This document shows, piece by piece, positions 38,346 through 38,756 of a stretch of DNA of 64,000 nt. Source of the DNA: Macrostomum lignano (taxonomy: Eukaryota); NCBI GenBank assembly GCA_002269645.1, contig NIVC01000206.1, positions 434,001-498,000 of the forward strand, given 5' to 3'. A program made the translations under genes and the position numbers. Under the pieces are notes generated by a model. It was not told where the DNA came from. It was given only the letters and a program-made list of their open reading frames with translations, and made no database searches. Each line of letters opens with the position of its first letter. Position 1 is the first letter of the stretch.

Positions 38346-38756
38346 ATGGCTCGCACCAAGCAAACAGCTAGGAAGTCCATGGGCGCCAAAGCGCCTCGTA
38401 AACGTCTGGCCACCAAGGCCGCTCGGAAAACCCCATTGGTAACTGGCGGAGTGAAGAAGCCGCACCGCTACCGCCCCGGCACTGTTGCCCTTCGCGAGAT
38501 CCGTCGCTACCAGAAGAGCACGGAGCTGCTTATCCGCAAGCTGCCATTCCAGCGGCTGGTTCGCGAGATCGCCCAGGACTTCAAGACCGACCTGCGCTTT
38601 CAATCGGCCGCCGTCGGCGCTCTGCAGGAGGCCAGCGAGGCCTACCTGGTTGGCCTGTTTGAGGACACGAACCTGTGCGCTATCCACGCCAAGCGGGTCA
38701 CCATCATGCCTAAGGATATCCAGCTGGCTAGGCGCATCCGAGGCGAAAGGGCTTAG
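38346..38756 (+). CDS. H3: Histone H3 variant: H3.3-type core with divergent N-tail (T11M, G13A, Q19R, S28T, A29P, P30L, S31V)
   Basis: Intact 136-codon intronless [42 protein letters not shown]...; core identical to the neighbouring H3. No histone stem-loop seen downstream. Confidence 0.96.

Follow-up and report, generated by a model that had tools for sequence, protein, structure and literature searches.

A histone H3.3-type gene with a divergent tail and a core shared by gene conversion with its neighbour in Macrostomum lignano

INTRODUCTION

Macrostomum lignano, a free-living and transgenesis-capable flatworm, serves as a model for neoblasts, the germline, and regeneration. In a 64,000-nt stretch of its genome (contig NIVC01000206.1, positions 434,001 to 498,000 of the forward strand; hereafter, the window, in whose own numbering all coordinates are given), an initial annotation made from the sequence alone had pointed to an intact histone H3 open reading frame (ORF) with seven replaced tail residues and every tail lysine retained. 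Is this a functional H3.3-type variant with an altered tail, or a duplicate in decay? Here, we address this question by examining the gene product, the flanking signals, a second H3 gene nearby, the pattern of divergence between the two copies, and the occurrence of the variant in protein collections and the literature.

RESULTS

The variant is a full-length H3 that differs from H3.3 almost exclusively in its tail

The coding sequence (CDS) of the variant is as follows.

38346..38756, + strand: variant H3 CDS, intronless, 136 codons plus the stop codon TAG (38754–38756), intact ORF

The reading frame runs without interruption from the ATG at 38346 to the TAG at 38754–38756, and the gene product matches the Pfam core histone family (PF00125) with a score of 159.4 bits (E = 5.5e-47). 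Residues 1–136 are colinear from end to end with the closest solved relative, H3.3 (4HGA_B), with no gaps or indels, and the differences between the two are exactly T11M, G13A, Q19R, S28T, A29P, P30L, and S31V in the tail plus I89V. In the tail, 29 of the 36 aligned positions are identical to H3.3, and every lysine and arginine is retained, including K4, K9, K14, K18, K23, K27, and K36. Residues 87–90 read AAVG (the A87/V89/G90 patch, with I89V relative to human H3.3). The list of seven replacements in the initial annotation is thus reproduced to the letter by the alignment, and its intact ORF of 136 codons, its seven retained lysines, and its H3.3-like 87–90 motif were likewise recovered.

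The replacements alter the surroundings of K27 in particular: the flank changes from ARKSAPS to ARKTPLV, i.e., TPLV takes the place of SAPS at positions +1 to +4 of K27, which are also positions −8 to −5 of K36. K9 keeps its ARKS motif and K36 its GGVKKP context, and residue 31 is a valine in place of the serine that characterizes H3.3. The placement of these replacements is clustered non-randomly: relative to human H3.3, there are eight differences, of which seven fall within the first 35 residues (p ~3e-4) and four occupy consecutive positions, residues 28–31 (p ~0.02). A compensated frameshift, considered as an origin for residues 28–31, was by eye not more parsimonious than substitutions and was set aside.

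A canonical-tail H3.3 gene lies tail-to-tail with the variant

The window contains a second H3 gene, which was missed in the initial annotation, on the opposite strand.

40192..40602, − strand: canonical-tail H3.3 gene with AAVG, intronless, convergent with the variant and its conversion partner
40751..40756, − strand: TATAAA of the neighbouring H3.3 gene, 154 nt upstream of its ATG, in a promoter unrelated to that of the variant
39939..39944, − strand: AATAAA of the neighbouring H3.3 gene, 248 nt past its stop codon

The two genes are arranged tail-to-tail on opposite strands with a spacer of ~1.4 kb, and their proteins are exactly seven amino acids apart, all within residues 11–31. The exact protein of the neighbour was found in public protein data, and intronless genes for an identical protein are present in ten chromosome-scale assemblies, which, judging by their accession numbers, are probably those of Schistosoma species and Hymenolepis microstoma. 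Because these ten assemblies encode the identical H3.3, AAVG is the normal flatworm H3.3 state and no peculiarity of the variant. In the ten retrieved H3.3 loci, we found no second H3 gene within 6 kb of H3.3 and no synteny with the 64-kb window. Immediately upstream of the neighbour's start codon (40603–40620, − strand), there is a pyrimidine-rich stretch with an AG two bases before the ATG (ttctcttaacccAG followed by CATGG), which could be a trans-splice acceptor; the variant carries GC where the neighbour has this putative acceptor AG.

Flanking signals of the variant are consistent with a replacement-type H3 gene

The control signals of the variant are listed below.

38195..38220, + strand: NF-Y-like CCAAT-type box pair, ATTGG at 38195 and GACCAATCAG at 38216, 130–150 nt upstream of the ATG, by consensus match only
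38997..39002, + strand: AATAAA poly(A) signal, 241 nt past the stop codon

The promoter region has no TATA box. The CCAAT boxes reported in the initial annotation are present (a direct CCAAT at 38216 and its inverted form, ATTGG, at 38195), with a count near chance expectation (three CCAAT/ATTGG pentamers in 446 nt versus an estimated ~0.9 by chance). Downstream, the distance between stop codon and AATAAA is alike in the variant and its neighbour (241 versus 248 nt). The missing histone stem-loop was confirmed by separate searches: RF00032 was absent from 38600–40300 even at E ≤ 10, an Rfam scan of the whole window at the gathering score returned no histone 3′ stem-loop, and a consensus stem-loop pattern had no match near either H3 gene. 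A tblastn search of the 64-kb window revealed the two H3 genes only, with no H2A, H2B, or H4. With its AAVG patch, its AATAAA in place of a stem-loop, and its location outside a histone cluster, the variant is supported by sequence as a member of the H3.3 replacement class, from which it departs by the valine at residue 31. The polyadenylated, replication-independent gene type proposed earlier therefore agrees with the architecture (AAVG, no stem-loop, AATAAA, and no H2A/H2B/H4 in the window).

Compared with the neighbour, which represents flatworm H3.3, the variant has an identical fold including AAVG and is also intronless, free of a stem-loop, provided with an AATAAA ~245 nt past the stop codon, and located outside a histone cluster. 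It differs from the neighbour in the seven tail residues, in having CCAAT boxes without a TATA box rather than TATAAA, and in its weaker start context: the base at −3 of the first ATG is C in the variant (CCCCGCATGG, 38337–38349) and A in the neighbour (CCCAGCATGG). The T11M replacement also creates an in-frame ATG (Met11) at 38379–38381, and leaky scanning to Met11 could in principle yield an H3 that lacks residues 1–10 and hence K4 and K9.

Several other identities for the variant were considered and rejected. A processed pseudogene or retrocopy of H3.3 does not fit, as there is no poly(A) remnant (no A-run of ≥8 was found downstream of the variant), no UTR sequence in common with the neighbour, and an intact ORF. 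A replication-dependent canonical H3 is at odds with the missing stem-loop, the missing histone cluster, and residues 87–90, which read AAVG rather than carrying S87/V89/M90. A CenH3 is at odds with a fold identical to that of H3.3 and a tail that remains alignable (29/36).

The core, but not the tail, has been homogenized by gene conversion

Divergence between the two H3 genes is distributed as a mosaic along the CDS.

38346..38441, + strand: variant-specific tail segment (CDS nt 1–96), differing from the neighbour by all 7 replacements and by 12 synonymous codons
38442..38746, + strand: conversion tract, variant arm (CDS nt 97–401), identical to the neighbour apart from 2 synonymous differences (nt 141 and 147), after which 254 nt match perfectly
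40202..40506, − strand: conversion tract, neighbour arm, from the nucleotide alignment, inverted repeat

Nei-Gojobori counts on the nucleotide alignment of the variant and its neighbour gave three distinct profiles. Specifically, codons 1–33 (tail) contain 27 nucleotide differences, all in nt 1–96 (12 synonymous codons plus 7 replacements), with dS = 1.20 and dN = 0.174. Codons 34–132 (core) contain 2 synonymous differences and then 254 identical nt, with dS = 0.027 and dN = 0. Within codons 133–136 (GERA), synonymous differences affect the final three, and the genes end in TAG versus TAA, with dN = 0 and too few sites for dS to be estimable. An identical run of 254 nt among 34 differences in 411 nt did not arise in any of 100,000 permutations (p < 1e-5). 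A repeat finder recovered the same structure as inverted arms that are 98% identical over 314 nt and 78% identical over 97 nt, the 314-nt inverted repeat spanning 38442–38755 and 40193–40506 with a spacer of 1,437 nt. Homology between the two genes reaches from ~14–20 nt before the ATG to the stop codon; their promoters and 3′ UTRs are unrelated, and the coding sequence alone is common to both.

Recently, the two inverted copies underwent intrachromosomal gene conversion, which homogenized codons 34–132. Conversion did not reach the first 96 nt of the variant, its last four codons, or either flank, all of which diverged long ago. To judge from the alignment, the core of the variant is a recent conversion copy of, or donor to, its neighbour. 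The simplest reading of the origin of the pair would be that a segment hardly larger than the CDS was duplicated long ago in inverted orientation and that conversion later affected the middle but not the edges. Because codons 34–132 were homogenized, the variant carries the exact H3.3 fold and the A87/V89/G90 patch; having been copied by conversion, these features provide no independent information on selection acting on the variant gene. The mosaic is a clean small example of a histone paralogue whose tail stays distinct while its core is homogenized. As a separate observation, a long hairpin would form if transcription read through both convergent H3 genes, and small RNAs against H3.3 could arise from it.

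Divergence in the unconverted tail suggests a history of constraint

The unconverted tail has a dN/dS of ~0.14 at a dS of ~1.2, the latter resting on only ~26 synonymous sites. We compared the seven observed replacements with a simulation of neutral drift that started from the neighbour's tail sequence and scored 32 residues, with the following results.

d = 0.6 per branch (half the distance): mean of 21.7/32 residues changed; P(≤7 changes, no stop) < 2e-5
d = 0.3 per branch: mean of 14.6/32 changed; P(≤7, no stop) = 0.003
d = 0.2 per branch: mean of 10.9/32 changed; P(≤7, no stop) = 0.07
d = 0.1 per branch: mean of 6.2/32 changed; P(≤7, no stop) = 0.57

We infer that the variant tail was constrained for most of its history, provided that the two lineages contributed comparable shares of the synonymous divergence. 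Simple neutral decay appears unlikely, because the tail has a dN/dS of ~0.14 at a dS of ~1.2 and the simulation expects ~22 of 32 residues to change versus the 7 seen. The initial annotation had argued against decay from the retention of the lysines. This argument does not stand by itself, since seven random replacements in the 36-residue tail spare all seven lysines ~18% of the time (and all lysines plus arginines ~6% of the time); its conclusion is nevertheless favoured by the dN/dS ratio and the drift simulation. The dS clock would fail if either tail segment came from a third H3 gene, in which case neutral drift of ~0.1–0.2 substitutions per site would explain the seven replacements. Synonymous sites are saturated relative to the ten outgroup H3.3 loci. 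The tail GC3 is 0.58 in the variant versus 0.73 in the neighbour, and this lower value together with the weaker start context (C at −3) may be a faint sign of relaxed constraint.

The M. lignano genome is repeat-rich and underwent a recent whole-genome duplication (PMC7053086). The tail divergence points to an H3 pair far older than this duplication. Since a tail dS of ~1.2 would place the pair before the duplication, a homeologous pair is predicted in M. lignano, as are orthologues in other Macrostomum species.

The variant tail in protein collections and the literature

The variant protein was absent from a public collection of ~15 billion proteins upon exact look-up as forms of 136, 208, 186, 125, and 135 aa. 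A contig index likewise contained no gene for the 136-aa or the 208-aa form, which is weak evidence, as this index is also without the 717- and 701-aa forms of another ORF in the window (described below). A search with the first 59 residues of the variant returned 3,089 H3 tails, the best of which (88% identity) is the canonical tail with 7 mismatches; no tail in the database was closer to the variant than the canonical one, although clustering at 90% could hide close variants within H3.3 clusters. Degenerate DNA patterns for two tail peptides had 0 matches in metagenome and prokaryote genome contigs, which hold few animal sequences and give this result little meaning. The diagnostic peptide strings of the variant did not occur in the searched literature, and among the searched papers on M. 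lignano, no title or abstract dealt with an H3 variant. Accordingly, the protein collection and the literature searched yielded no exact match to an already described variant. Going by its sequence, the gene product is best read as a new lineage-specific tail variant of the H3.3 type.

Two neoblast-enriched H3.3-like M. lignano transcripts are listed in the supplement of Grudniewska 2016, RNA1509_677, which is trans-spliced, and RNA1509_8448, which is not. Because both are listed as neoblast-enriched, M. lignano expresses at least two H3.3-type genes, which may or may not include the variant, in its stem cells.

Alternative explanations for the variant

One alternative holds that the variant is a decaying or non-functional duplicate, whose core was overwritten from the functional neighbour and whose seven tail changes are neutral damage lying beyond the reach of conversion. 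With the conversion tract making up 305 of the 411 nt, most of the ORF integrity is indeed uninformative on selection, and the evidence that counts comes from the unconverted parts. These contain no frameshift or stop, and the last four codons differ synonymously only. Moreover, the same 96 nt that hold the replacements carry 12 synonymous codon differences (dS ~1.2), for which equal branches predict ~22 replacements and frequent stops (P < 2e-5); drift of only 0.1–0.2 substitutions per site, however, gives ≤7 replacements without a stop in 7–57% of simulations, and lysine retention by itself has a probability of ~0.18. The 215-nt leader before the variant ATG is without any ATG, which speaks weakly against decay because 11% of windows of this size share the property. 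The lower tail GC3, the weaker Kozak context, the missing TATA box, and the absence of the protein from every public protein set searched point the other way. Taken together, we regard decay as a serious possibility, albeit a somewhat unlikely one.

The sharp step in divergence at nt 96/97 also invites the reading that the gene is a recent chimera, functional or not, in which the 5′ 96 nt were acquired from a third H3 family member (e.g., a replication-dependent H3) and the tail dS reflects deep H3 paralogy. Both mosaic boundaries fall inside the CDS, and the codon for V31 (GTA) is one step from the Ala codon GCA, the canonical-H3 state, and three from the neighbour's AGC, in line with such an origin. 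Yet a third H3 gene is absent from the 64-kb window, the two genes can still be aligned over ~14–20 nt before the ATG, which is what a single old duplication unit should show, and the 3′ end escaped conversion likewise, which fits an edge effect between short repeats. We consider this origin improbable. An artefact of assembly or sequencing (e.g., two H3 paralogues joined into a chimera) might be suspected in a repeat-rich and recently duplicated genome (PMC7053086), but the 27 differences in nt 1–96 preserve the frame and the H3 tail pattern, each H3 gene is bounded by unique flanks and has promoter motifs and a poly(A) signal of its own, and a repeat of 314 nt is not long enough to confuse a long-read assembly; this explanation is very improbable indeed.

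DISCUSSION

A candidate function for the variant

The reading that we prefer, and to which we give roughly even credence on the sequence evidence, is that the variant is a functional, lineage-specific, replication-independent H3.3-type gene that originated when the resident H3.3 gene was duplicated in inverted orientation. According to this proposal, purifying selection would have held the tail segment while conversion kept the fold identical. A tail under purifying selection would in turn imply that the variant gene is expressed. The H3.3 pathway, with HIRA/DAXX-type chaperones, would then deposit the variant, and ordinary nucleosomes would be expected to form, albeit presenting a different signalling surface from which the phospho-acceptors T11 and the H3.3-specific S31 have been lost. 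Kinases of the Aurora B/MSK type are basophilic, and a Thr-Pro site suits proline-directed kinases; the change of the basophilic S28 site (Aurora B/MSK type) to Thr-Pro would thus presumably disfavour the former and favour the latter. The changed residues at +1 to +4 could plausibly alter the contacts of K27 and K36 methyltransferases and readers as well.

A more far-reaching version of this proposal is that the variant is an old flatworm H3.3 paralogue whose distinctness from its neighbour is maintained because conversion of its tail is selected against, that is uncoupled by its K27 flank (ARK-T-P-L-V) and by the loss of T11 and S31 from phospho-switching of the Aurora/MSK type and handled differently by PRC2 or K36 methyltransferases, and that neoblasts or germ cells would deposit via the H3.3 pathway to mark a special chromatin state. 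We put this version forward as speculation with a low chance of being correct in full.

Because gene conversion keeps the fold identical, the variant differs from the resident H3.3 in its tail alone and would amount to a natural experiment on the K9/K27 flanks and S31, with confounding effects of the fold or of chaperones absent. That its host is a transgenesis-capable model of stem cells and regeneration adds to its potential use. Lineage-specific H3.3 derivatives are common, and one more is in itself unsurprising.

Relation to other H3.3-derived variants

Human H3.5 is a retrogene expressed in the testis. As a protein (H3.3C, H3F3C; PDB 4Z5T), it resembles the flatworm variant in being a lineage-specific H3.3 derivative with AAVG, with a replacement beside K27 (A29T), and with the main tail lysines up to K36 retained. 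Unlike the variant, it carries G33C, has lost K37, and has K79N and F104L in the fold. Furthermore, H3.5 keeps T11, G13, Q19, S28, P30, and S31, all of which are replaced in the variant. The two also differ in origin, the variant being a local inverted duplicate rather than a retrogene.

With respect to the conjectural stem-cell role that the initial annotation envisaged, a precedent may be found among acoels, which are unrelated to flatworms. Of the four H3.3-family genes in Hofstenia miamia, two are enriched in a subset of neoblasts, and regeneration depends on one (Hulett et al. 2023, PMC10163032). By analogy, these paralogues lend plausibility to that idea, but unlike the variant, they are changed in the 87–90 motif (AAIL, IALE) and not in the tail. 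In the mouse, numerous species-specific H3.3-like genes (H3mm) that are a few residues apart show tissue-specific expression, going by the abstract of Maehara et al. 2015 (PMC4574566). Their substitutions, as in H3mm7 and H3mm15 (PDB), are scattered and include the fold, unlike those of the variant, and that abstract describes no conversion mosaic with a parental neighbour. In Arabidopsis, the H3.3-like variants H3.10 (sperm-specific) and H3.15 (K27H) are reported to change K27 methylation behaviour in specialized cells (PMC10426802). H3.15, in a plant lineage, replaces K27 itself, whereas the variant keeps K27 and has only its flank altered. Together, the H3.5, H3mm, Hofstenia, and Arabidopsis variants may be regarded, by analogy, as precedents for H3.3-derived variants with restricted roles.

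Other features of the window

An ORF of 717 aa at 47706–49859 (− strand) contains no Pfam domain and ends in a C-terminal RGG-repeat tail. Its residues 17–717 (701 aa) are 100% identical to the M. lignano hypothetical protein PAA81990.1; it has >5,000 relatives at E ≤ 0.001, and some cluster mates bear the name "ATP-dependent DNA helicase." A transposable element is the probable carrier of this ORF. A remnant of a mariner/Tc1-type transposase, with matches to HTH_48 and Transposase_1, lies at 17748–18746. Exons of CNOT9/Rcd1 are present at 30049–31575, with best database matches that are 79% identical and none from a flatworm; M. lignano's own CNOT9 is apparently not represented in the protein collection. 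Ordinary neighbouring genes are represented by a KH-domain exon (poly(rC)-binding-protein-like) at 5743–6255 and a septin exon at ~22985–23266.

The window overall is very rich in micro- and minisatellites. Long (TGTC)n microsatellites at 33600–34400 adjoin an 84-nt tandem repeat at 35063–35432, whose units contain the CCAAT-box-like CCAGCCAATCAGAG, resembling the box upstream of the variant H3 gene.
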